Shown here: piece after piece, positions 5,032 through 62,003 of the stretch
Layout of the letters: the number at the start of each line of letters is the position of its first letter
How positions within the stretch are numbered: position 1 is the stretch's first letter
DNA from: Chara braunii
Lineage: Eukaryota; Plantae; Charophyceae
Length of the DNA: 64,000 nt
Assembly (NCBI GenBank): GCA_003427395.1
Contig: BFEA01000012.1
Coordinates: 1,330,641 to 1,394,640 of the forward strand
Direction: 5' to 3'
Notes under the pieces: generated by a model
What the model saw: the letters and a program-made list of their open reading frames with translations, nothing else
Told to the model about the DNA's origin: nothing
The model's database searches: none
Translations under genes and position numbers: made by a program

Positions 5032-5963
5032 TTTTTTTTTTTTTTCTTATTTTTTTGGAGGGGTGACTATGCTCCAATCTATTCGTGAGGAGCCACTGGT
5101 GCTGGTAACCGGGCCCAACGTACCATTTGAGACATATTTGAGAACTAGTCTTCATTTTCATGGTCACGGGTGCCCCGGGGACGCACGGATCCTTGCACGG
5201 TCGTGCGGGTCCCTTGTACGGCCCCCGTGCAGCCCCAGCGCAGTGTTCATAAAAAAATGCTAACTTTTTCTCTACTTCGTCGTCTTCTTTTTCTCCTCCC
5301 TCGTCGTCTACCTTCGTCTTCCCCTCCTGCCATCTCCTTCATCCCTACCACTCCCTCTTACTCCTCCCGCTCCTGCCTACTTCCCCTCTTGCCATCTCCT
5401 TTGTTCATCCCACAACCTCCTACTTCCACTCCCGCCATCTCCCTCATCGCTCTCACGATCCTCCACCTCTCTCCCGCCACTTCGTTCCTGCTCCTCTGCC
5501 ATCCTCCACCGCCCTCCCGTGACTTCGTTCCTGCTGTTCCGCCATCGTTCACCTTTTTTCCATCGTCTTCTTCCCACCACCCTTCCGCCATATCGAACCT
5601 CCATCCCACCTTCTCCCACATACCTCCCGTCGCCTTCCACGTCCCCTCCCACCATTCCCACCTCCATCCCGCCGTCTCCCACCTACTTCCCGCTACCTCC
5701 CGCTTCCCCTCCCGCCATCTCCCACGTCCCTCGCACCATCCTCTCTGTCCCTCCCGCCACTTTGGTCCTCTTTTTCTGCCATCTTCTTCCTCCCTCCTGC
5801 CGTCCTCCACCTCCCTTCTCCCATCACCATTTCTTTGCATGTGTGGAAAACGCAGATTTGGGCACTTCTCTGCATGCGCAGCAACCACCCATTACCACTG
5901 TTTTTTTTTTTTTTTTAATACCTCGCATGGGTGCACGGCTGTGCCGGGCTGGTCGGGCAGCTC
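5032..5963 (-). mobile_element. Non-coding retroposon with LINE-type 3' module and poly(A), inserted into the old LINE
   Basis: T-tract at 5032-5056. Shared tail motif at 5071-5125. 8-bp direct repeat AGGAAGCC at 5024-5031 and 5964-5971. The body is low complexity and purine-rich on the minus strand. Confidence 0.6.
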
Positions 5964-12381: not shown

Positions 12382-14979
12382 CCAAAACTTTATTGGATAA
12401 TATTAGATTTAATCCTAGAATAGTCGGACTCTCCCTTTATCCCTCACTACAATGGAAAGGGGGAGCGATTGCTAACGACTTGACTATAGCCTATGAAAAT
12501 AGTTCGGAGGCTCTGACAAAACTCAAGAGTATCTTAGATAGCTACTGTGTTATTTCCAAGGCATCCAAAATTGGCATTAATCAGTCTACTTTTACCTGCA
12601 ATGTTCGACCTGAAGGTCAACTGGGGTCTTCGACAAATACCTACAGAGAACTCGGAGCGCTTCTTGGGTATCTTGGTCTCACTCTCAGATTGTTCAAAGG
12701 CCCAGGACCAGCTGCTGGCAGACAAAGTCATGGCGCGGGTAAGCAACTGGCAAAGGAACCACAGCCTCTCCTTATATGGAAGTGCGTTGGTACTGTCCTC
12801 GGCAGCCTTCTCCCTTCTCTGGTACTCCCGAGCAATAATCAGATTGGGGGACGAAGCCTATACACAGATCAAGAGAAATGTTGCTAAATATCTATGGAAT
12901 CCGAATGCTAAGGAAGGAGAAGGACACATGACAAAGGTGGCATGGGAGGCCATCGCCCTCCCTCGCAAGCAAGGGGGTCTGGGAGTGTTGGACCCCAGAC
13001 ACCAAAACGTAGCATTGCTAAGTAAATGGCCCGTGAAGGTCATGTTTGAGGATCCTTCTAAACTGTGGATCAGCCTATATATTGAGTAATACATGGGGAC
13101 TGTCTACTCCAGAAATGGTTTGGTTGTGCCTCCTAATCCCTTCTTATAGAAACAAGAGACCATACTCAAGAGTATGGAGGGACATCCTCTATGCATGGAA
13201 CAAGATACTCCCTCGGAGCAGCAATAAGCCCAGCTCAAGGGAAGAGACATTAAACCAACTTTTATTCGAGAACAGCAACATCACTCAAGATAACGGTGAA
13301 GAGTTCACGGCAGGAGGTACGGCAGGAAGTTTCGGGCACTCGTGGCTAAAGAAAGGTGTAATGCAAATAAGGCATATTTGGGATGAAGAGAGGGAGGAAC
13401 GGATCTCCGCTGAGGCACTGAGACAGAAACTGCCCCGGCTCCGCAACGTTGATAAGAACTTGGTTTCTCTGATGGCGGCAATCTCGAGTGGTTGGGTCCA
13501 ACTTCTGAGGAAAGACACAGAGATGGCAGCAGATACTTGGGTGTACTCGGAGGAGGACCAAGGAAGGGTCTGGAGAATTTTGGGCCCGGACCTGGCTAAA
13601 GGAATAAGAGTTGAGTGGAGGATTCCAGGATTCGTCTCGAGTGGGGACACCTCCCAGAAAGAGATGGTTGTTGACTCAGAAAGGACGATCCAGACTGCGA
13701 AGGGTCTTCAAGAGGTGAGAGTGTGGTCCAGACATAAAGGAAAGCAAGTTAAATTCCTAGGTACTTCTGACCAGTTTCGGGTGGAACCAGAAAGTAGGAG
13801 CTGGAAGGTGGCAGGACAGGAACCAATACCTCTTACACAGTATAAAGCTAAGATTGGTACCACAATGCGACAACCGAAGATAAAGAAACTCCTTCCTTTT
13901 TGGCTACCAAAAGACTGGTAAAAGTGAAGAATGGGGTGCCCCTGAAGCCTGATTGGACAGCCTTCTGGCAGGCTCTGATCAGTCTTCCTTCGCAGAAGGA
14001 CGCCAGTCTTCTCTGGCTTCAATCCTTGCTGGTGGTTGCATCAGCCCTGTGGGGCATGGAGATCTCAATCACCTGCAGAAGGTGCGACTGGGGCTGGGAG
14101 TCAAACGCATATCTATGGTTATGTTGTCCACTGGCTGACGAACTCTGGATATGGTGGCTCCAACACTGGAATCTCATTACTGGCCCAGCATGGCCATGGA
14201 CAGATGACTGGTCACTGTATGGGATCCCACCAGTTCAGAATGGTTCATATACTGAAGGGTGGGGTTACGAAGCTCTGGTTTGCAGAGGAGTTCTCCTACA
14301 TATGGAGGGCAAGGAACTCTGTAATTTTTAGGAGTACTAAAATTCCCGTACAAGAACAGCAAAGCCAAGTGAAAAGGAATATCAGAAGCATGATTTTGGC
14401 CGACTGGCAAAAAGGGCCCAGGAGCGAAAAGAAAGGAGTTACCTGGTTTCTGAAGACGTGGGCTAAAGACAAACAGCTGGCTACTGTGACATTGGACAAA
14501 AGGCTGATGCTCTCCCGGTGGCTAAAGCCTCCTTGAGTATGGATTTTATCTAGAGGCCGATTTAGGCTTCTCTGGAACTGGTGTAGTAAGGAAAATGCTT
14601 TCGTTATGAGCTCAAGAATGCCTTTGAGGCGAGACGCAGTTGGTTTGACAAGGCCCAGTTAGACAAGTACGAGTAGGTAGATTTTGAGATTGGGCTAGTT
14701 GGGAGCAGGATTGAATGGTCAAATTGGTGCTTAAAGAATAGCATAGGCCGTAGGATTGGAATATACATGTATTTCCCCTCAGTCACCCTTTTTTCTGAGC
14801 TTCAAGTTTGGTTTTTTGAGAAGTCGTAATTCTGTTGAGAGTTGAGTGCTCTTGGGACGCTGGACCCGGTTTCCAGCATGGTGACTTGGGGACTCCGGGT
14901 TGAATTGTGAGGTCCCCGGCCTCGACCACTGTTTTTGGAATATAAAGAGACAACTTCTCAAAAAAAAAAAAAAAAAAAA
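12382..14979 (+). mobile_element. 5'-truncated L1/Tx1-type LINE (family A), frameshifted ORF2 from the end of RT to the C-terminal Cys motif
   Basis: Starts in RT (GAIANDL, degenerate ADD). Contains LPRKQGGLGVLDP and CRRCDWGWESNAYLWLCCP. Poly(A) at 14960-14979. TSD AAAAAGTYGGCAGT at 12368-12381 and 14975-14988 (one mismatch). Confidence 0.92.
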
Positions 14980-19048: not shown

Positions 19049-20027
19049 TTATATATGTAGTCAAACAGAGCTGCCTAGTAAACCGTAGGCAGAGAGGGAG
19101 AAGAGGACAACAACCGAGGGACTGTGACAAACTGTTTCGATGGAATTTCACGACTCATAAGGAGGCTGAACCATATGGTTCATTCATGTGAACTACAGCT
19201 GCTGCATGCTTAGTTTTCAGTTTCAGAACACCAGCCACTGAGTCAATCTATTTACACTACCCAGAGGGAAAGTTTTCGCACCAGACGCAAGGGTGGTAGA
19301 CAACTGGACAGAAAAAAAAACAGTACCTGTGAAGTCAGCATTAAACGACCACCGTTTTCCAGCAGGTGATGCTCCCCACCAATAGATGGAGCCTATCCCC
19401 AGGTGCTAAAACTGTTTTTTCAAAACCACCGTTTTCCAGCAGGTGATGCTCCCCTCCAGAGGGAAAGTTTTCGCACCAGACGCTAGGGATCGTTTTTCCA
19501 AAAAAAAAAAAAAAAAGAAAAAAGAAAAAAAAGCATTAAACGACCACTACCTGCGAGACCCAGCAGAATAGCATCTTCTGGCAGTCCGGGAGGGGGAAAG
19601 CCAGGCCTATTGTCCCCACAATGTGGGAAAAGGAGGTCCTGCCAGGTAGTCGTGGCATAAGACGGAATGCACCTAAAGAGCCATGACGAAACAACACACA
19701 TGCATTCGTCACACCTGAGAGTTTGCCGCTCTACCCACTGTTATGTCACGGCATTGTAACCCTCACAAACACATCTACTAAACTGCATCCGCGACCGTGA
19801 ACGCGATGGTTATGGTTTTCCTTCTAGAGCAATATTCAAATTGCAAACTGGAGTTAATAAAGGACTAGATCCCCAGGCCAACAAAAGGGCCAGGGAAAAC
19901 TTGGCCGGCCGGGCCCAGGGGGAAAAAAACAGAAATCTTATTATTATTATTACAAGTCACAGGCGCGCCGCGGCCATGCTGCGGCAGGCGGGGTGCTGGC
20001 ATGTGACCCCGCGGCACCAAAGATGCG

Positions 20028-20763: not shown

Positions 20764-21253
20764 NTCTCCAACCTCGCGGCTGGCGTCACGCTACTTCCAT
20801 GATAGGATGAGCAAAATCGAACGAATCTTTCGGTAGAACATAGAAATATACACTCCCTGGTTGAATCTGCCCGACACCTGCGGGACAACGCTTTCTGCAA
20901 TCGCCGGCGCGGCGCCAAACAAACCCGGCGTGCACCGAAAAAAGACGTACCAACGCGCCCGCCCGCCCCAAAAAAAAAACCGTAGGAAACGCGTCTACCC
21001 CATCCAACCCAAAAGATTGAAAACGCGGAAAACGAAGTGAATTCGGGGCCCTCGAACCCGCGCCCTGCAAAGTGGGCCGTGAAAAAGTGTGCAGTAAACG
21101 ACAAAAAACAAAACAAAACGAAACGTTGCACAGCGCCTGTCCCATCCAACCGAAGCGCGGGACTTCTTTTCCCTGGTCCCGTGGGAGCATCTTCCGAGGA
21201 CCGCTTTTGCCTTTAAGTATTAGTAGATTATTTTTTCAATTTGCAAGAGAATC

Positions 21254-23284
21254 TTTTTTTTTTTTCCAGAAACATTTGTGGCAACCTGCGGTTGGAGGTG
21301 ATACAAGCATCCTCCAATAGCAAGCCCCAGTTGATAGATGGCTCCAATCTAGTGGTGGGGAGCATCACCTGCCGGAAACCGGGTCCAGCGTCCCACTGAC
21401 GAGATCGGACACAATATACCTTGCGGAACTGCATTGATTGCCCTCACACGAGGGGATCGACTGCCCGCCCAATTATCTAGCCATGGAGAGGGTGACAAAC
21501 TGACCTCCAATCTACCCTAATCCTTCACAGTCACAACCGTGCATAGGAAACCCTAGGCCCCCTCCGTGCATAAGGCCGCTGCCCAGCTCCATGATTCTCA
21601 TTTTTCGTCAGCGGAGGTCGTCTGCCTACCCTCCCTTATCCTAAGCTATTCACCCGGCGAAGATCATTCACATGAAATTGTTCTTGTCAAATTTATGGCA
21701 GAGGTTAGCAACATCTGTGACATATATCATTATTTTTATTATTATCACACATCTGCCGTGCATACTCTTCCCCCTGCGGCTTTCCCAACCAGAGTTCTGC
21801 CCATCCCTTATTGATTACCCTATCTCCTCCCCCTATCCACCACCCAAATGACAGACCCTCCTCCCGCTCCTCTCCATCGTGCACCCCACCCGGTGCCAGC
21901 CACAGAATATTATGACAGTCGGGACAGGCAACAGAGAGGGAGCAGAGGGAAACCATAGGTCAAAGAGGGACTCCGACAGGTGATATTTTACTCAGGAGTG
22001 AAACAATCAAAACACATGCCAAACCCATCGAATCCAACCCTCCCTGCGGTCAACTAGCTGAGCCACCCCCATGATTGTACCACGCCACAGCTCAATAGTA
22101 TTAACCTCTGGGGGGGGGATGGTATACCCCTGGGAAATAAAATAAAAAAACAGTCATCGTCGTCATAGTACGGTAAGTCATCACACATGATGTCATTGCC
22201 CGCATCAGACTACTGAGTAGATGGCGAATCAATTGTAAAATAACCTTTAAGAACAAGCGTCGTGGGAACCGCATCACCTACCTCCGCCGAAGCACCGTTG
22301 TCAAACAATGATGATGATGCCTTTTGATCTTCAGTGGGCTGTTGGAGACTGTGAGACGGATGTCAACAAAGCTTCTGGAGCAAGCGCCTGGATCACCGCT
22401 CCCACGTCCGTCGAATCTCCATTATTCACTACAACAGACTGAGACTGACAGCCAAATGATGCTGACACCGTGTGATCGTCACCCAATTCACCACACGCCT
22501 GAGCCAATGGTCGCTGTTTCTGGAGACAGAGTGGAATAGTTGGTGATGAGACTGTTGTAGATGTTGTTGTTGATGTTGTTGATGTTGTTGATGTTGTCCA
22601 TGTCACGCTATCCTGATCTTCATATGAGAGCAACTCACTCGATTGACCGCCCACGTCTCTCCTTGCTAGAAGCCCGATAAACATGTCTTTCACCTGCATC
22701 AGCATCCCAGCACAATCGTGTAGGGCAGTCATCGTCTGTGCTCCGTTATTCATATCCAACTGTCGAAGAGAGATCTGCGCATACAGCTCGTCCTCCCACT
22801 CATCATAGATCCCCTCTCCCTCCAACAAGATGTCATCTGGTAGGTTGCCATATTCTTGACTTAGCAACGCGTGCATCTCCTCCAGCTGCTGTTTATACAA
22901 GGTCACAATGAGCAGTGCGGAATCTGCCTGCACGAGCTGCTGGGCAGGAGGGATTTCCCACAGCCCCCCATCAGTCATGGTCGTCGTGTCCATCTCTGCC
23001 GTCGTTATTGATGTCAGAAACTAATACTGCTACGCTGCAATCACGTTTTTTCAACAAATTCACAGCTGGCGCTGCCCCTGTCCGCGCGTCACGGGACACC
23101 CACGTCACCAACAGCAGCTGCCACGTGGCAATCAGGATGCCACACGCGTCCGCCAGGCGCATGCACAGGCCTAGCGGCTGAGGAACTCCCTCCCCCAGGC
23201 ACTAGTCTAGCCGGCAGACCGGGCATTGCTGGTCTGGCGGCGTCGGGGCGCTAGCGCTAGCGCAGCGTTGGCCCCATCAAGCCA
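21254..23284 (-). mobile_element. Putative non-autonomous single-ORF retroposon (HAL1-like architecture)
   Basis: On the minus strand: GC-rich leader, then a 220-aa ORF, a long 3' UTR, the LINE-shared tail module (21340-21395) and poly(A) (T-tract 21254-21265), ending at target TTGCAAGAGAATCT. The 5' end is 23284 or 23426 depending on the model. Confidence 0.55.
22331..22993 (-). CDS. Orphan 220-aa acidic protein, helical-looking N-terminal half and T/S-rich linker
   Basis: Intact ATG-TGA ORF with protein-like composition (LYKQQLEEMHALL, YDEWEDELYAQISLRQL). No recognisable domain. Confidence 0.5.
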   Translation of the reverse strand: MDTTTMTDGGLWEIPPAQQLVQADSALLIVTLYKQQLEEMHALLSQEYGNLPDDILLEGEGIYDEWEDELYAQISLRQLDMNNGAQTMTALHDCAGMLMQVKDMFIGLLARRDVGGQSSELLSYEDQDSVTWTTSTTSTTSTTTSTTVSSPTIPLCLQKQRPLAQACGELGDDHTVSASFGCQSQSVVVNNGDSTDVGAVIQALAPEALLTSVSQSPTAH

Positions 23285-23437
23285 GGTGCCACCATGAGGC
23301 AAAATTTTAGTTTTTATTCTGCATAACACAGTTTATTTTTCAGAACTTTTTGATTCCCCCCCCCCCCACTTTTGCAAGGACCTCGCCCTTAAGTGAACGG
23401 GCCGCCTGGGAAGACAAGGTGTCCCGTTACAAGAGAA

Positions 23438-23441
<4 letters not shown>

Positions 23442-23494
<53 letters not shown>

Positions 23495-23950
23495 CTTCTT
23501 CTCTCAACTTTTTGTTTTACCTTCCACTACCTAAGACTATCTAGAGGGGACCCCTGCAAGCATAGTTTTCCTCTCTCTGTGAAGGGGAGATTTCATGTTG
23601 CCCCTTGCCCCTAATGGTTAGGGTATAGGGTTCGGGCCGACAGTGGGGGTCTGGCTAACACAAAGACCGAGACCTGCCAGCAGTTGTGCCTCCCTTTCTC
23701 ATCGTCCCCCACCCTTCATCGAGTAGCAGCAGAGGCTATGGCCAACACTCTCCCACACACCACACACAACCCACTCGCGCTCACACTCACACCCGTGTTG
23801 GTCATAGACCCCGCTAATACCGATCAGGGGTATCCAGAGGACTATCACAGTCCGTTGGCACTAAGTGTGCCGCAGGCGGCCATGGGGCTTGAACCCACAA
23901 ACCTCCTGAATGCCACTTGCATGCCTAACCAACTGAGCCAGGCCCCTGGA
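23442..23950 (-). mobile_element. tRNA-derived SINE
   Basis: The head reads GGGGCCTGGCTCAGTTGGTTAGGC...GTGGGTTCAAGCCCCAT (Pol III A and B boxes, T-arm). ~55-nt poly(A). Perfect 15-bp TSD TTACAAGAGAATCTT at 23427-23441 and 23951-23965. Confidence 0.93.
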
Positions 23951-24586
23951 TTACAAGAGAATCTTGGTGTGACCCCGAGGCAAAAGTTGTTTAGTTTTTA
24001 TTCTGCATAACATAGTTTATTTTTCAGAACTATTTGAGTTTGTTTGTTTTTTTCCCCGCAGGGATCTTGCCCTTAAGCTGTCGGGCCGCCTGGGCAGTCA
24101 AGGTAGCCCATACGGCCCAGTTGGTAACCCAGCTAGATCCATGATTCTACAAGACCTGCTTCAGAGACCACACACACCCACTGGCACAAAGCCAGCGAAA
24201 AAACGAGGCATTCCCGGAGACACCCGCAAATAAAAAACGGGAAAATAAATCACAAGACTCACAACTGAAATCGGTTAAACACCAAAAAACAGATTTCAGC
24301 TCTGCACTGATGCATATCAGGGCAGAACAACGGAGAAAAACGCACATCAGAACACACACACTAACATACTCCATATGCTTTGTAGTAGGAATTTAGAGAG
24401 TCTCAGATTGGTTGTTCGTTGTTTTTGTTTGGTTTCTCTTTCCCATCTTGCTGTTAAGAAAGGACTTGGGGCAGCCCTTTCGTCAACCAGTTGTCATATT
24501 AGCACTTTGTTTCATTTACTGATTTGCTCTGCTTGTGGTTTGTTGGTCCTTTTGGAAAGCACTTTGTCTTCCCTCGTGACTTAGCA

Positions 24587-25045
24587 TCTACAGGCAGCGG
24601 TACGACGAAGGCAGTGTGAGTGTTGCCGCTAATGGTGGGAACACTATTAGCTTGTAGGTAGCAGAAGAAGGGTTAGGGAGCGAACTAGAACTATACCCAT
24701 GGTGATCCTTATTCATTGACTGTTGCTCTCATTCAGGATCAAAGGGTGCGTGGTGGGAAACCCGTTTAGGCAGTTCAGGTGGAATTCCATTCCACATTAA
24801 ACAATGTTTTTCATAACGTACTTGATTGTTAAATAGTACACTAGGTTGGCTTAGCCTTTTGGTGGTCATATTTTATTGTTATAGTTTTGGAAAATTTTTC
24901 CCTGTCTTCCACTCATGAAGATTATGGTCTTGTAAGGTAATACCGCTTCTACAGGCAGCGGCACTAGGGAGGCAGTGTGAGTGCAGCCGTCAGTGGACTG
25001 TACCCATGGTGATCTTTATTCGTTGATTGTTGCTTTATTCAGGAT
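24587..25045. repeat. Degenerate direct repeat, ~360-bp spacing, ending at a gap
   Basis: CTACAGGCAGCGG..GGCAGTGTGAGTG and TACCCATGGTGATC..TTCAGGAT are each present twice. Confidence 0.85.
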
Positions 25046-25319
25046 NNNNNNNNNNNNNNNNNNNNNNNNNNNNNNTCATTGAGAACATTTGAGGTCGTTT
25101 GAGGTCATTTGAGATACCGCGGCCATTACCCGGCTTCGGCTGAGAACAATCTGTGAACACGATGAGATTCAGAAACATGGGGAGGATCCTGAGTATCTAA
25201 TGCCTATTAGGAAATTACTCATGCAATAACCTGCCACAGAGGTCCTACGAATGCTCACTACCCTCAGGTTCCCTGACAAACCCTTCTAAGACTTCCCAAC
25301 ACCGTCTTACTCCCTGCTG

Positions 25320-29200: not shown

Positions 29201-31158
29201 ATTCCACTCGAATGGATTCGTATTCTTAAGGGCGGCCCCAAATTTGGGACAAATGACAGGGTTGCTCTCAAGGCTCAACCCCAGGAAATTGGCATAATTC
29301 TAGACCATGATCCAAATGGGGGTTTTCTTTTACATATTTTTTTTTTATCATCTACTAATGTTGCAGTGTCAATAGATCAATGAGAAACAAGATGGGTCTA
29401 GGCTCAACAGATTTTTAGGATAAGGGTAATCAGGAGCAAGGATTCCTGTGTAGCCTTTAAGCCGGACTGCCCCATCTCGGAATTCCCTCTTGACCCGGCT
29501 AATTGGGTATGGAGTTCAGTGACAAGAAAAGGGCGACATAACAGATTTTTTAAGAGGAATATTCACTCGTTTAAAGTCAAATCAGCGTATCGTATGCTGC
29601 GACCCAGAATCAATCTAAAAGATAGGGTCTCTATTAGGTGGATGAAACATCTTAATATAAGTAAGGAGGAGTTGAGGTCGGTCCGCTGGTTCAAAACAGT
29701 CAAAGACAAACCAGCAAAAATAGTTTCTCTCCAATGACAAATTGAACATAGGTGTCGACTGACTCATTGACAGATCCTCCTTAGAAAAGAAAGGATTAAC
29801 AACAAGATGGTGTAAACTTTGTAAATCTGCTTTCCCAAGTATAATATCTTCGGAAACCATAGAGCATATCTTTATGGAGTATCCGGGCTCAATCTGACTT
29901 TGGAGGTAGTGGGACCGTATCTGGTCATAACTAGTCCCACAGGTCAAATGGCCATGGGGATGGAAAGTTATCCTTCTAGAGACTTGGAGCCCGGATCCAG
30001 AATTAGTAGAAAATAATGAAGAATTTGTGGATAACCTGTTCCGAATAGGGAGAAGAGCGGTAATGTGGGTTATCTGGATGAGGAGGTGCACTTATGAATG
30101 GGAAGGGGCTAGGCTAGATGGCCCAGACTTCACAGAGACAATTAAACAACAAATTCAAACAGACATTTTGACGAAGTGGGACCGAATAAAAGAAAAAGTG
30201 CAATTTCTCTCAGATACAACCGAAATTCAGAATCATTTTTAAAAATTCACAAGTAAGTGGCTGGGCGGAAACCAGGGAAGGAGAATAGGGAGAGTTTTTT
30301 GGAATGGGGCAATGGATGATGATGATGCTGGGCTCAAAAGGGACTATAAATTGGTTTTTGATGATTGGACCACCATTGAGACTTCAGTACCTATGCACCC
30401 CTTATCAGACTTCCCTGATCCCTTCCCCCCCCTTTGCATCTGCTCTTGTTCCAAGTTCTTGGTATGGTTTATAGGGGTTAACATTTCTAGTTACAACAGT
30501 GATATCTGGCGTCGTGGAAAGGGATGTTTACTAAGTTCTTCTGCTGAAGGATATGTCAAAACAGTAGCTGGCTAACTCAGCTCTCAATCGAGTCATCACT
30601 TTTATCAGGATCACTTATCCACATCAGTACCCGGTCTAAGTTGGGAAATCTGGCGCCACTCAGATGAGGGTGAAGAGGTACAAGGGACACTGGGCCCGTT
30701 TCCCAGCATCATCGGTTTCTATTGCTCATCATTATATGTCAAGGGACGCTGGACCCGCTTTCCAGCAGGTGCAGCTCCCCACCAATAGATTGGAGCCCCT
30801 AGTGGTGCTGGTAGGAGTGTATGCTCTTATCATCACTCCTATTAGTAACCATGAGGTGGTGTTTTCAAAACGTCCATGCGTCTCCTGCCATCCCCAACTT
30901 GACCCCAACATGACACCCCAACCAATCACAAAACACTAGGCTGCTGGCTCCCCTTCCAAAAGGGCGGGTTGTGTAATCCCACCGTCCGTTTGTCAGATGA
31001 TCAACAGTTTGCAGTGATCCCACAGTCACACAGGTAGCAGAAAACTATACTACACCGCTGCATGTGGGCCGAGACCACTATAGAATTGTGAGGTCCGCGG
31101 CCTCGAGTGGAATTTCATTGCATAAAAGAGAAAACAAAAAAACAAAAACAACAACAAA
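26248..31158 (+). mobile_element. Decayed L1/Tx1-type LINE (family B), truncated within the APE endonuclease
   Basis: EN motifs VYGPN, AGDFN, SRIDL, LDH. RT motifs NYRSISLL, FIDFEKAYDHV, VRQGDPLAPFLF, FVDDL. C-terminal WCKLC..ETIEHIF. Multiple stops and frameshifts. Tail modules at 30743-30797 and 31082-31106. A-rich tail at 31123-31158. Confidence 0.93.
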
Positions 31159-38746: not shown

Positions 38747-39525
38747 NNNNNNNNNNNNNNNNNNNNNNNNNNNNNNNNNNNNNNNNNNNNNNNNNNNNNN
38801 NNNNNNNNNNNNNNNNNNNNNNNNNNNNNNNNNNNNNNNNNNNNNNNNNNNNNNNNNNNNNNNNNNNNNNNNNNNNNNNNNNNNNNNNNNNNNNNNNNNN
38901 NNNNNNNNNNNNNNNNNNNNNNNNNNNNNNNNNNNNNNNNNNNNNNNNNNNNNNNNNNNNNNNNNNNNNNNNNNNNNNNNNNNNNNNNNNNNNNNNNNNN
39001 NNNNNNNNNNNNNNNNNNNNNNNNNNNNNNNNNNNNNNNNNNNNNNNNNNNNNNNNNNNNNNNNNNNNNNNNNNNNNNNNNNNNNNNNNNNNNNNNNNNN
39101 NNNNNNNNNNNNNNNNNNNNNNNNNNNNNNNNNNNNNNNNNNNNNNNNNNNNNNNNNNNNNNNNNNNNNNNNNNNNNNNNNNNNNNNNNNNNNNNNNNNN
39201 NNNNNNNNNNNNNNNNNNNNNNNNNNNNNNNNNNNNNNNNNNNNNNNNNNNNNNNNNNNNNNNNNNNNNNNNNNNNNNNNNNNNNNNNNNNNNNNNNNNN
39301 NNNNNNNNNNNNNNNNNNNNNNNNNNNNNNNNNNNNNNNNNNNNNNNNNNNNNNNNNNNNNNNNNNNNNNNNNNNNNNNNNNNNNNNNNNNNNNNNNNNN
39401 NNNNNNNNNNNNNNNNNNNNNNNNNNNNNNNNNNNNNNNNNNNNNNNNNNNNNNNNNNNNNNNNNNNNNNNNNNNNNNNNNNNNNNNNNNNNNNNNNNNN
39501 NNNNNNNNNNNNNNNNNNNNNNNNN

Positions 39526-39608: not shown

Positions 39609-40295
39609 GAGAGGCGAGCGTCTTTGAGAATGTAAGGGGGAGAGAAGAGTGAGTGCGTGGAGGAGGAAGTGGCGGAGGAGGTGCAGTGGGACGTAACTCG
39701 TAAAAACAGTGAGTGTTTGGATGATTTAAAATTTTCCTATTTTGGCCGATAACTCGCAAAAAATGCATGGCAAGACCCGTGGGCAACAAATTCAATGCAT
39801 CTTTGCGCTTTGGGCAATGACGTAGTCCGTGAGGGCTGACCGAGAGGCGTCTATTGCTGGTCGACAAGTAGAACAAATTGAATGCCTTCATCATCTGAGG
39901 GGAATGTGGGGCAAGTGCTCAAAGAGATGAAAACAGTCGAACTGTGAACACAAGCGATTAACGAAACCTGAACCTGAACAAACATTTATATATTTTGAGA
40001 AATGGGTAAACGAAGCTGGATGTTTGAAACTGTGTAGTCATCGTTGAGCGTGATTCCAATTTAGCAAACCACGCTGATCTCTGGTATTCGATCCGCGTAA
40101 TCAACAGTCAGAAATGAGTGATAGCTGTGACGTGCCTCGGTAAGATGTCTCGGAATTCATCTTTATCTATTGAGATCGTCATTAATTGCTTCAATTTACG
40201 GTCACCTGTTACAGGCCTCTTTTCCTAGATTGTCTTAAACGCTGATGCCATTCGATCTTAAACTACATGAGTCTCCGGTGAGTTTTTAGTGAATC

Positions 40296-56815: not shown

Positions 56816-59800
56816 TTTTTTTTTTTTTTTTTTTTTTTTTTTTATTTTTACGGGAGCTCCAATCTATTGGTGGGGAGCTTGCACCTGCTGGAAAGCGGGT
56901 CCAGCGTCCCTTTTGATACAAACATAACAATTTGAGTCATGGCTGCAAATCGGGTGGAGCGTCCCACATGAGGACTGAAGAATAGCTGAATGAGAAAACA
57001 AAAACTAGAACCTTTGTGCCTCTTCACCCACATTGGGCGCCAGGAATTCTTGACTACCAAGCACAAACCATAATTCTTCGTCAAAATATCCCCAAGGAGA
57101 CGACCCTTTGATCTTACCCATACCATGATAAGGGAACCAAACAAGAACCTGGTAGAGGAAAGGGATCTGGGAAGTCAGATAAGGGTCTTAGAGGAATTGA
57201 GGGGTCAACAAGACTCCAATCATTAAAGACTAGTCTACAATTCCTTTGAAAAGCCCTTTGTGAATTTTCATGAGCTCCTTCCCACAACACCTTCCCCAAC
57301 CTCCCTCCTTGGTCTCCCCCAAGCCAGCTTCTGTTGAACTTTTTGATGTGTTGCCATATCTCATTTTGTAGAGAAAGATGCTGGATTTTCTCTTTTAAAT
57401 TTTCCCATTTAATAGTGATATCTGTTTGAATATGTTGTTTAATAGAATCAGTGAAATCTGGACCATCCAATTTGGCCCCTTCCAATTCGTGGGTACACCT
57501 TCTAACCCATATTGCCCAAATAATAGCTCTTCTACCAATTATAAACAGATTATCAGTGAACTCGTCCACTTGTCCTGGATGCCAGAATTCTAGGAGAAGG
57601 GCTTTCCAATCCCAGGCCATGGGAGAGTGGTTCCCAATTGGCTCCAAATCCTGTCCCACCAACGCCAAAGCCAGACCGAACCTGGGCATTGGAGAAAAAT
57701 ATGTTCGATTGTTTCTGGAAAGAGCTTGGATGGAAAGGCATGTCTACAAAACTTACACCAAGGAAGAGCGATACCTTTCTGATCTAACGAAGTTCTGTCA
57801 ATGATCCAGTCATTAGTAGGGAGGCAGCGGTGGGATATTTGCCATTGCAAGGAGGCTACCTTAGCAGGTTTAGATTTACAGGTATGAAACCACTTAACTC
57901 CTCTCAACTCTTCCTTACCGATTCTCAGATTCTTCATCCATCGATCTTCAATGCGATCTCTAAGATTAACCCTTGGGCGCAGCATTCTGTAAGTGGACTT
58001 CATCGAGAGGGTATGTAGGATCTAGAATAGGAGCGACCCTGTCTACTATTACAAGACCAGGTTCAATATAGAGGGTCAAAGGGTAGGTGGGATATCGGTA
58101 TTTCGGGTTTGAAGGAGAGCCATTTATTATTGACATATAATACTCTCACTCGGAAAAGCTGGTCAACCGTACACCACATAGTGTCCTCCTAAGATCTAGG
58201 AGCAAGAAAACCATCCTCTTGTAAATCAAGTATAGATATTAGGATATCCACAGAATTACGGATGTCAATTATATTCCCCACAATTCCCTTAATACATCGA
58301 GTTGCCACCCAGTCACCAGGGAGAAACTTGGGTCCTTTCTTTAAAATCCTGACCCAGTCCAAAGGAATTAACTCGATGATATTATCCAATGCAGTCCTCT
58401 GATGATGACTGTAGCGCAGTCGTTCTTGAAGGTTTATGGCAGAGAACCAATCCTTTGTTTCTTGATTCCAAAGATCCTTAACACGTATGATTCCTCTTCG
58501 AATCCAGCCTAACCATGGGCTATCCATATAGTGGAGAACACATCCTTGAGAATCCCTGATAAATGTATTATTAAATAAGGGTTGCTGACGAACTTCTTCC
58601 CATCTTGTAGGATGTATTTTATCTGGTAGGGGCAGTTTCCTCTAGTTTTTCAATAATATAATCCAAAAGGGATCTCTACAGAGGTCACTCCTAGCTGCTT
58701 GTCCATTTGAAGGATCCGAACCTTGAAGATCCACTGAACTTCCCCTTGGAAGAGACCAGGATCGGTTTTCTAGCCACATTAGCGGGTCTGTTTCGGCTGG
58801 AATAGGAGGAACTAATCTCCTTATCTGCTCACAGGCAAGAGGGATCCATGGAGTGATGGGGCTAAATAGGAGACGTTTAATCCATTGAATAGAGAGGGCT
58901 ATAGCTTGGGTATTAGGATCAATGATCCCAAGATCACCCATAGACTTTGGTTGGATTATAGATGTCCATACCACTCTGCTGATGACGTTTTCCTGCTCAT
59001 AATTCCCACGCCACAAAAAGGCTGCCAAATGACGCTGAAAAGTCTTGAGAGTCAATTTATCTAAAGCCCATAATGCAGATTTGTACCAAATGGAGGCTAG
59101 GACCACATTGTTGATTATAAGAGACCTCCCGAATAAAGAGGTATGTTTATTTTTCCACAACCCCAGTTTTGAATGGGCATGATGCAAGATCCCTTCATTA
59201 ATTGTTAATGGTTTACCTGAGGCAGATAAGGAAACCCCAAGGACTCTAATAGGTACATCCGACTGCTACCATTTAATCTGAGGCTGCTCAGGGGGTCACA
59301 CTCCTTGATAATGAATCCACCAGCCTAGAGTTTTATTACCCCAATTTACCCTCATGTCAGAAAGCTTGCAGAAAGTGTCCATGATTATTTTAATTGCTTC
59401 CAGATTTGCATGAGAAGCCTCAACCATAAGAGAGAGATCATCAGCGAAGAGAGAACATACTGGAATAGCATCCTTTGGAATAGAGGAAATCCGGATGCGA
59501 CTAATATCTTTGTGGTGCCTTAAATTAGCTGCTAGCGCTTCCATAATAATCACAAAGAGGAGTGGTGCAATGGGGTCACCTTGCCTCACTGATCTCTGAA
59601 GAACAATAGGGGGTGCTACATTACCGTTAACCATAACTCTTGTAGTTGCATTTCTATGCAAGATTCTAATCCATCTTCTAAACAGTGGGCCAAAATTGAA
59701 TGTTTCTAAGCATTTGTCTAGAAAAAAACAATCCACGTGATCATAGGCCTTTTCAAAATCAATGAAAACAAAGGCGGCATTATGCTTGGATTGACGAGAT

Positions 59801-60496
59801 AGCCTGACAAGTTCATTGACCAGCAAGATATTATCCTGAATATTCCTGCCCTGGATGAACCCGGTTTGGGATGGATGAATTATATCTGCAATATACTTAT
59901 TCAGGCGATTAGTAAGAACTTTAGAAATCAACTTATACACAACTGTCAACAAAGTTATGGGGCGATAATTCCTAATATTGCTTTTTTCACCCTTCTTATA
60001 TAATAACGTGAGGACACCTTGACCCACAAACTCCCCCATCCAGCCAGACTCCCATACCTCTTGGTAGAAATCCATGAGATCTTGGGAGATGAAGTCCCAC
60101 GTGGCTTCCCAATATTCCTTTGGCAGACCATCAATGCCAGGAGCCTTTTCTTCCTCCATAAGCATGAGAGCAGTCCATACTTCTTCTTTAGCAAGTGGCA
60201 AATCTAATTGCTCTTTCTGGACATCAGATAGGGCTCTAGTCATAGGGGTAAGGAATTCATCTATTTCCATGGTACGCTGAGTTAAAGGAATATCACTAGT
60301 CTCAGAGAGAAAAAGATTTAAAAAAAAATCCCTTGCGGTCTTAGTGCATTCAGCCGTTGAGGTGAAAAGTGGACCATTCTGATTATTGGGATGGGCCAAT
60401 GCCTCGATGACTGTTCTGCCAGACCGGGCTCTTGCCATAGCAAAAAGCCTCGCGTCCATGGATCCCTCCGTTTGATGTTTCCCAATTTTGCCCCTA
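56816..60496 (-). mobile_element. 5'-truncated LINE (family B) with largely intact RT
   Basis: 387-aa RT ORF (KAPGIDGLP, NYRPITLL, IDFEKAYDHV, RQGDPIAPLLF, FADDL) and WCKFC..ETIEHIFLQCP. Poly(A) at 56816-56849. Perfect 11-bp TSD ATCGGGTGATG at 56805-56815 and 60497-60507. Confidence 0.95.
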
Positions 60497-60870
60497 ATCG
60501 GGTGATGCTACGTGCGCTGCATCGAAAGTCCGCCAGGGAAGACGCTGTGTACTGTCATTTGAACAATTGGTGGCTCTTAACTAGACTACAACTTGGGGGC
60601 AAAAGACAACAGAAGCGGGGAAAGAAAAGATCTGCCAAACAAAGAGGCAAATTGCTCAAATGACAAGGGGGGGGGGGGGGGGAAAGGGGGCTGCTGTGTA
60701 CAACTCGGGCACAAAAGGACACGAAAACGGGGAGGAAAAAAAAAGAAAGACAATCCAACCGAACAAAAGGCAAATGATCAAAGCAGGCCGCTGTGAAACT
60801 TGTATTTGCGCAGCTGGTCTCTCTGAACTTAAATACCACCTTCATGCCAGTCACTTTCTACAACCACCGT

Positions 60871-61202: not shown

Positions 61203-62003
61203 CTAGGACGGTTTGTTGGACTCTCGCACCGTACCATCCATCTCAATTTTCTTTCTTTTCTTTTTGAAAAGGCCACCGGCCTTGAGGTGTCATCATCGAC
61301 CTGACCGGCCCTGAGTTATTTATAGTTATATTCAGACTTATTCTATTCCATGATTCCATCAGAATTGGACCTCAGGTCTGTTTGTCAACAGTTGTATGGG
61401 TGTACCATTCTGCCATATGGGCTGGGTCACCCATCTCTTTTCATGTCCATCAGGCTGTTTTCGTTTGTGCTTCATTTTGTTTTCTTTCTCCCTTTTTTTT
61501 CTTTTTTTCTTTTTCCTGCCCATCACCCTTGTGCAGGGGCCGTGCTAATCTTCGCTGTATAGGTCCAATTTTAACGAATGTCCCCAAGGACTTTTTTCTG
61601 CCTTTTGCCTTTTGACGGCACCAAATCCTGGACAACCTCCCAAAACATCATTGAACGGTTGATGTCATCCACAGAAATGAAAAACACACCGTATGTTTTG
61701 GGAGTGACTCGAGCCGTGACGTCAGGGACTACCAGAGGATCAAAGCACACATGACATATTTTCCAAGGGACTCCCGGTGTTTGTTGCTTCTGGAAGAGCC
61801 TGGAGGCTCCCGTTGCTCTGTAACCTACTGGCGTGCTGCAACTGTCTGAGTACCCACATATCGAAAAATGCCGAAAACAGGCCTCACGTGGATATTCAAG
61901 CCCGCCTTCACTTAGGGTGGCATGGGCTTGCTAGGGGCCGCAGCCCAGAACACTTGTATGTCTGATAAGGGTCCCGTGAGGGCTTATTCCTTTCAGAGCG
62001 CAG

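Follow-up and report, generated by a model that had tools for sequence, protein, structure and literature searches.

Arrangement of the locus

The region analyzed here is a 64,000-nt stretch of the Chara braunii genome (GCA_003427395.1, contig BFEA01000012.1, positions 1,330,641 to 1,394,640 of the forward strand), referred to below as the window, and all positions are counted from its first base. Between 21241 and 24110, two different poly(A) retroposons lie stacked at copies of the same 15-bp sequence. When the minus strand is read, the order of parts is block B, the 15-mer AAGATTCTCTTGTAA, a short interspersed nuclear element (SINE) with a tRNA-like head and a poly(A) tail, a second 15-mer, block A, an element of approximately 2 kb (element E) with its own poly(A) tail, a third 15-mer with one mismatch and then unrelated flank (Table 1). 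With t for the 15-mer and t' for its mismatched copy, the locus reads B-t-SINE-A(n)-t-A-E-A(n)-t', and the copies of t match at 15/15 and 14/15 positions. Tandem insertions separated in this way by a target site duplication (TSD) are a feature of target-specific Tx1-type systems. The structure suggests, but does not prove, that insertion here favoured a particular target.

The sequence TTRCAAGAGAATCTT is found exactly three times in the window (at 21241, 23427 and 23951), where approximately 0.01 chance matches would be expected, and repeat-finding independently recovered all three copies (family D7). The copies at 23427 and 23951 are identical to each other and bracket a 456-nt element. Runs of T adjoin two of the copies: 12 T at 21254-21265 for the copy at 21241 and 55 T at 23440-23494 for the copy at 23427. 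Each run represents the poly(A) tail of an element on the minus strand. A sequence-only reading made before this analysis had listed the three 15-mers, the abutment of the first two on poly(T), and two blocks of about 140 bp, the second of which was said to start exactly at the TSD edge. Sequence searching, repeat-finding and a blastn match between the blocks (E=1e-19) bear out each of these observations, block B does begin at the base after the 15-mer, and all coordinates of that reading hold.

A perfect 9-bp inverted repeat (CTTTTGCCT / AGGCAAAAG, at 21208-21216 and 23977-23985) brackets the empty site as reconstructed below, with its arms about 51 nt apart. This repeat may be due to chance or may be a feature of the target (a rough chance estimate for that neighbourhood is ~0.02), and it forms no stable hairpin around the reconstructed empty site.

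Table 1. Features of the stacked locus and their positions in the window
Feature	Position	Strand	Remarks
t', 3' copy of the 15-bp TSD	21241..21255	-	AAGATTCTCTTGCAA on the minus strand; 1 base different from the other two copies
Poly(A) tail of E	21256..21265	-	10 nt (12 including two T of t')
Body of E	21266..23284	-	~2-kb non-autonomous poly(A) retroposon with one open reading frame (ORF), a GC-rich (62%) 5' untranslated region (UTR) and a 3' end of the long interspersed nuclear element (LINE) type
55-nt 3' motif	21340..21394	-	also carried by L1-type LINEs and by further tails of the window, at 30743-30797, 56856-56910, 19352-19393, 5071-5125 and, in part, 14853-14884
ORF of E	22331..22993	-	intact, 220 aa; no Pfam family; N-terminal ~115 aa conserved, followed by a Ser/Thr-rich stretch
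Block A	23285..23426	-	142 nt; diverged copy of the sequence directly upstream of the target; possible 5' leader of E (E' = A + E) on the best reading
Middle 15-mer	23427..23441	-	5' TSD of the putative E' and 3' TSD of the SINE
Poly(A) tail of the SINE	23442..23494	-	53 nt, pure (55 including two T of the 15-mer)
SINE-like retroposon, tRNA-headed	23495..23950	-	456 nt; tRNA-like head at 23874-23947 with A- and B-box-like motifs
Upstream 15-mer	23951..23965	-	5' TSD of the SINE; 15/15 against 23427-23441
Block B	23966..24110	-	resident sequence directly upstream of the nick site (...CACC/AAGATT..., slash at the nick); homologous to block A

Blocks A and B

The two blocks are identical at 104 of 145 alignment columns. 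Their homology starts at the first base of A after t and runs as far as ...CACC, the position that directly precedes t in B; in window coordinates, block A ends one base before the middle 15-mer at 23427, with no gap. No resemblance to the block or to E is seen in the left flank (20765-21240) or in the sequence upstream of B, so the homology is restricted to 142-145 nt beside the nick. Thus E is preceded by a 5' extension that is homologous to the upstream flank of the target, as in Tx1-type target-specific systems, and the homology ends exactly at the nick. At the junction of block A and the 5' UTR of E, the proportion of guanine plus cytosine (GC) steps from 49% to 62%.

Identity between A and B is 82% outside a homopolymer linker, and the two blocks differ at 18-28%. 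Conservation is a mosaic, with 96% identity in a 45-nt AT-rich core, 69-77% in the flanks of this core and 10% in the homopolymer linker (Fisher p=0.003). This pattern is better fitted by two paralogues of a constrained repeat than by the neutral decay of a local duplicate.

No third copy of the block was found in the window with an nhmmer profile of A and B, even at E<100, and a metagenome scan with the block core gave no match. An Rfam search gave no family for the block, and its fold is no more stable than those of shuffled sequences (z = -0.75 and -1.5); for these reasons we rejected its identification as a known RNA or ribozyme. Ribozyme families gave no match to 23200-24250 even at E<=10. 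Three other interpretations were considered and rejected. First, a third, degenerate block in the left flank, as part of a tandem array of block plus 15-mer, was hinted at by a MAFFT alignment, but Smith-Waterman comparison with shuffles gave p ~0.09 at best and nhmmer gave no hit at E<100. Second, B-t-flank is not an older member of the E family, as the flank has no homology to the body of E. Third, a TSD of ~157 bp for either E or the SINE is incompatible with the order of parts. Further upstream of B, segments 24584-24739 and 24945-25045 are 81-89% similar and lie ~310-360 bp apart, the second being interrupted by an assembly gap (25046-25075); both are parts of an unclassified repeat.

Element E

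Element E consists of a 291-nt GC-rich leader, the intact 220-codon ORF, ~1 kb of non-coding sequence and a tail of A10-12; together with block A (E') it measures 2.17 kb. Its 55-nt 3' motif is ~91% identical to the LINE tails at 30743-30797 and 56856-56910 and departs from the window consensus at 2 of 55 positions. Because LINEs have this motif too, E is a LINE-dependent non-autonomous retroposon rather than a copy of a host mRNA. A second copy of E was not found in the window.

Relatives of the 220-aa ORF are limited to five C. braunii hypothetical proteins (47-64% identity), and an Atlas lookup gave no lead. When the ORF and these five paralogues were used as tblastn queries, nothing else was found in the window, which includes three LINE copies, and homology to a LINE ORF1 was thus not detected there. 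E therefore resembles HAL1-like (ORF1-only) elements in having a 3' end in common with an autonomous LINE, but not in having an ORF homologous to LINE ORF1. The Ser/Thr-rich middle of the ORF (22540-22600, minus strand) is encoded by a (TGTTGT/TGATGT)n-type microsatellite, and the five paralogues vary in length at this point.

The SINE with a tRNA-like head

The SINE carries a poly(A) tail of 53-55 A and is flanked by a 15/15 TSD, as expected of a SINE. Its head shows a weak Rfam tRNA match (16.5 bits, under the gathering score of 29) and ARAGORN calls no tRNA there, while A-box-like (TGGCTCAGTTGG) and B-box-like (GGTTCAAGCCC) motifs are readable. It is present as a single copy in the window, and a metagenome scan with the head gave no match. 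An ORF antisense to the SINE, which runs through the 15-mer into block B, had no relatives in a protein search.

LINEs and other retrocopies in the window

L1-group LINEs are abundant in the window; they carry Exo_endo_phos, RVT_1 and zf-RVT domains, and their best PDB hits are human L1 ORF2p. These domains place the LINEs in the L1 group, with an endonuclease of the apurinic/apyrimidinic (APE) type; the ORF2 copies are fragmented, and Tx1 is not separable from L1 at this level. Among these LINEs, no autonomous Tx1-clade partner sharing the target was found. The LINE at 56844-60496 (also listed as 56816-60507, minus strand) is a 5'-truncated L1-group element of ~3.65 kb with a reverse transcriptase ORF (59296-60459) and an A28 tail. 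It has the same 3' motif as E and a clean TSD of 11-12 bp (CATCACCCGAT on its own strand) that is unrelated to the 15-mer. This was the one further clean TSD obtained when those of other tailed elements in the window were collected for a target logo. At 19261-19488, several 33-34-nt pieces of the LINE 3' motif are arranged in tandem, forming a multi-copy tail cassette beside an A17 tract.

Small nuclear RNA (snRNA) copies are also found in the window. A U6 snRNA retro-pseudogene (61492-61591, minus strand; Rfam 66.6 bits) is 3'-truncated into an A-rich tail and has an A-rich flank before it. A degenerate U4 snRNA copy (39799-39933, plus strand; Rfam 55 bits), probably a pseudogene, lies just past an assembly gap (38747-39525).

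Interpretation of the locus

The sequence-only reading offered two structural alternatives: either a duplicated target was hit twice, or one site was hit twice and the larger element carried ~140 nt of upstream target with it. The second fits best with the 15/15 and 14/15 TSDs, with the edges of the A/B homology and with the precedent of the Tx1-Mar and SINEU elements (PMC4494074). We therefore favour, at slightly less than an even chance, a history in which a single site was hit twice and E carried block A with it as a 5' leader, from a source copy that occupied the equivalent position in a paralogous target. When all readings that involve a target preference are taken together, their chance is about one in two. 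The comparison "R2-like" made in the sequence-only reading survives as an analogy only, as the LINEs of the window carry an APE-type, L1-group endonuclease and the block has no ribozyme match.

According to the favoured reading, the empty site on the minus strand would have been B-CACC/AAGATTCTCTTGTAA/ATTGAAAA..., and the two poly(A) retroposons, whose structure is seen directly, would have entered it by target-primed reverse transcription. Both insertions would have shared one bottom-strand nick (C/A) and one top-strand nick located 15 nt downstream of it, leaving the three copies of the 15-mer that now lie between the parts. E' most likely inserted first, given its short tail and 14/15 TSD, and the SINE, with its 53-55 pure A and 15/15 TSD, would have followed. 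This order is only suggested by how long the tails are and by the one mismatch in the TSD, and the reverse order yields an identical map. The source copy of E' that supplied block A would have been located immediately downstream of a paralogous block, with transcription starting inside or in front of that block. The E lineage would then have landed at the junction of block and 15-mer at least twice, and the SINE once, which would mean that the machinery prefers this sequence, as in the crocodilian Tx1-Mar/SINEU system.

Several results argue for block A as a carried leader. First, if E' is A plus E, both elements become ordinary products of target-primed reverse transcription (E' between t and t', the SINE between t and t), and the start and stop of the A/B homology exactly at the 15-mer are accounted for. 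Second, the 14/15 identity of t and t' has a probability of 0.66-0.88 for a TSD, as compared to 0.05-0.22 for units diverged like the blocks. Third, it is unlikely that A is a fresh copy of B made at insertion, since A and B differ by 18-28% whereas the ORF of E is intact and its 3' motif is nearly at consensus. In simulation, neutral change of at least ~7.5% per lineage, the amount implied by this divergence, left the 220-codon ORF open in at most 9% of runs, and in <1% with indels. L1-type endonucleases prefer to nick at a pyrimidine/purine step with an A-rich start; the CC/AAGA nick is such a step, begins an A-rich TSD and is acceptable for an enzyme of this type. Occasional double hits at one site are by themselves to be expected in a genome so full of retrocopies, but the A/B homology calls for more than chance, and of the explanations for block A a carried leader requires the fewest ad hoc steps.

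Other observations weigh against this history. The pattern is known from a single locus, and since block, 15-mer, SINE and E are all without further copies in the window, a multicopy target has to be assumed. A weak point is that the 15-mer is absent between A and E; the 5' junction of the source copy must then have lacked a TSD, which is an extra assumption. The LINE at 56844-60496 has the 3' motif of E and yet sits in an unrelated target (TSD CATCACCCGAT), so the family with this motif is not strictly specific for the 15-mer. The tail of the SINE is unrelated to that of E and to those of the LINEs in the window, leaving a partner common to the SINE and E unproven. The block matches no recognisable RNA or gene. 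Finally, human L1 machinery, although non-specific, has inserted repeatedly at identical sites, and in one instance both orientation and TSD size were the same (PMC3219598).

A rather unlikely alternative is that block A was fused to E by template switching. The reverse transcriptase would have jumped from the 5' end of the E RNA onto an RNA ending in ...CACC (the block), and B would represent the 3' end of a retrocopy of the tail-less RNA that had entered the same nick earlier. The nick would thus have been used three times, and the block-ending element might itself be target-specific. The common 3' boundary of A and B would then be an RNA 3' end, and both small-RNA retrocopies in the window (U6 with its A-rich tail, and U4) and documented fusions of LINEs with small or unknown RNAs (PMC4476161, PMC2104539) make such an event conceivable. 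No sequence like the 15-mer is present upstream of B at up to 3 mismatches, so that the earlier insertion of B would have lacked a TSD, and a TTTT run 17-20 nt before the end of the block argues against an RNA polymerase III (Pol III) transcript end. The blank Rfam search and shuffle-like fold of the block also count against a small RNA. As the window contains no other copy of the block, the involvement of so rare an RNA in two of three hits would be an unlikely coincidence unless the RNA belongs to a targeting element.

The duplicated target of the sequence-only reading is likewise unlikely. In this case, an old local tandem duplication of a 157-bp unit (block plus 15-mer) would have given B-t-A-t', after which the SINE entered at B/t with a 15-bp TSD and E entered at A/t' without one. 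Such a history needs no paralogous locus, both block copies of the window being at this one, and the 82% identity of A and B outside the linker is compatible with an old duplication. The t/t' match of 14/15 is still allowed (probability 0.05-0.22), though t and t' must then be better kept than the blocks, as opposed to 0.66-0.88 for a TSD. The absence of a TSD for E contrasts with the 11-15-bp TSDs of the SINE and of the LINE at 56844-60496, the SINE TSD would end at the duplication boundary by coincidence, and the mosaic conservation (p=0.003) would be unexpected under neutral decay. Furthermore, two hits at one bond are still needed, so the question of target preference remains.

More improbable is that L1-type machinery without target specificity hit the site twice by chance or at a hot spot, with A being copied from B during insertion of E (a 5'-junction duplication of upstream target) and diverging since. 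Ordinary L1 endonuclease is documented to re-use identical sites (PMC3219598), Chara is saturated with retrocopies and the CC/AAGA nick is a pyrimidine/purine step of the L1 type. The divergence required since the insertion is difficult to reconcile with E itself: A and B differ by 18-28% in a conservation mosaic, while the 3' motif of E is only 2/55 off the window consensus and an intact ORF is expected in <1-9% of simulations for such an age. In addition, no known mechanism places a copy of the upstream flank between TSD and element without an intervening TSD. Were the locus nevertheless a hot-spot double hit only, it would be an ordinary by-product of massive retroposition.

Least credible of all is a single composite insertion, in which a transcript SINE-A(n)-t-A-E-A(n), produced by read-through at another locus, was inserted with the outer 15-mers (23951 and 21241) as a valid 14/15 TSD and the middle one as cargo. 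It is conceivable that Pol III read beyond the poly(A) and the 15-mer, as the SINE is followed on the minus strand by no TTTT until near the far end of block A, but the transcript would stop there and leave out the 2-kb E. In addition, the source would need a 15-mer in front of a block where here it stands behind one, and the internal 15-mer would match the upstream TSD copy at 15/15 through paralogy alone, more closely than the true TSD pair.

It is possible, although doubtful, that C. braunii harbours a target-preferring system of L1/Tx1 type aimed at a multicopy repeat (block/AAGATTCTCTTGTAA), which brings different non-autonomous passengers (an ORF-bearing element, a tRNA-SINE) to one bond, with target-derived 5' leaders supplying their transcription. 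To our knowledge, target-specific non-long terminal repeat elements with APE-type endonucleases have been described mainly from animals. If such a system exists in Chara, a target-preferring strategy so far described in animals would be placed in the plant lineage, and the locus would be a streptophyte example of a repeat serving as a safe harbour, with unrelated passengers at one site and target-derived 5' leaders. It would also make it easier to understand how the Chara genome tolerates so very many retrocopies, and would provide a natural sequence-directed insertion system for study.

Comparison with known systems

Re-use of identical sites by human L1 machinery has been described for NF1, BTK, APC and F9 (Wimmer 2011, PMC3219598). 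As at the Chara locus, two different retroposons can occupy an identical site in the same orientation and with a TSD of the same size, with no site-specific element involved (PMC3219598). In contrast to the Chara locus, the human insertions are independent alleles in different people rather than a stack on one chromosome, and none of them carries a copy of the upstream flank.

Chimeras of the U6/L1 type and of the WEIRD/MGL type are similar to E' in that a 5' module from a different RNA is fused to a poly(A) retroposon within one TSD pair (PMC4476161, PMC2104539). A recognisable full-length cellular small RNA forms the 5' part of an L1-mediated chimeric retrocopy, whereas block A has no Rfam match and the Chara 5' module corresponds to no known RNA. 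Furthermore, a homologous copy of this module adjoins the insertion point, which chimeras do not explain.

R2 elements use a restriction-like endonuclease, carry an HDV-like (hepatitis delta virus-like) ribozyme and do not generate long TSDs. The Chara locus is different in all three respects: the LINEs of the window have an APE-type endonuclease of the L1 group, TSDs of 15 bp were made, and the block region (23200-24250) has no ribozyme match. R2 is co-transcribed with 28S rRNA, and its RNA can carry upstream target sequence, which helps 5' joining (cited within PMC4494074).

The closest parallel is provided by the crocodilian Tx1-Mar LINEs and SINEU SINEs, poly(A) retroposons of the APE type that insert at one position of another repeat (Kojima 2015, PMC4494074). 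Tandem insertions "sandwiching a TSD" of ~16 bp are common among them, and the 5' extension of SINEU-2B matches the target flank upstream of the insertion, its master copy having sat in a target copy and been transcribed from the flank (PMC4494074). The Chara locus has both features, namely two insertions in tandem around a TSD and, on the 5' side of E, an extension homologous to the target flank upstream. It differs in three ways. First, the crocodilian system comprises hundreds of copies and a Tx1-clade partner LINE, while the Chara pattern is known from one locus. Second, the leader in Chara is without TSD sequence. Third, the Tx1 clade has been described as animal (PMC4494074), while Chara is a streptophyte alga. 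If the favoured reading is correct, the stacked locus of C. braunii would represent a Tx1-Mar/SINEU-like system, with an unrecognised target, in a new lineage.

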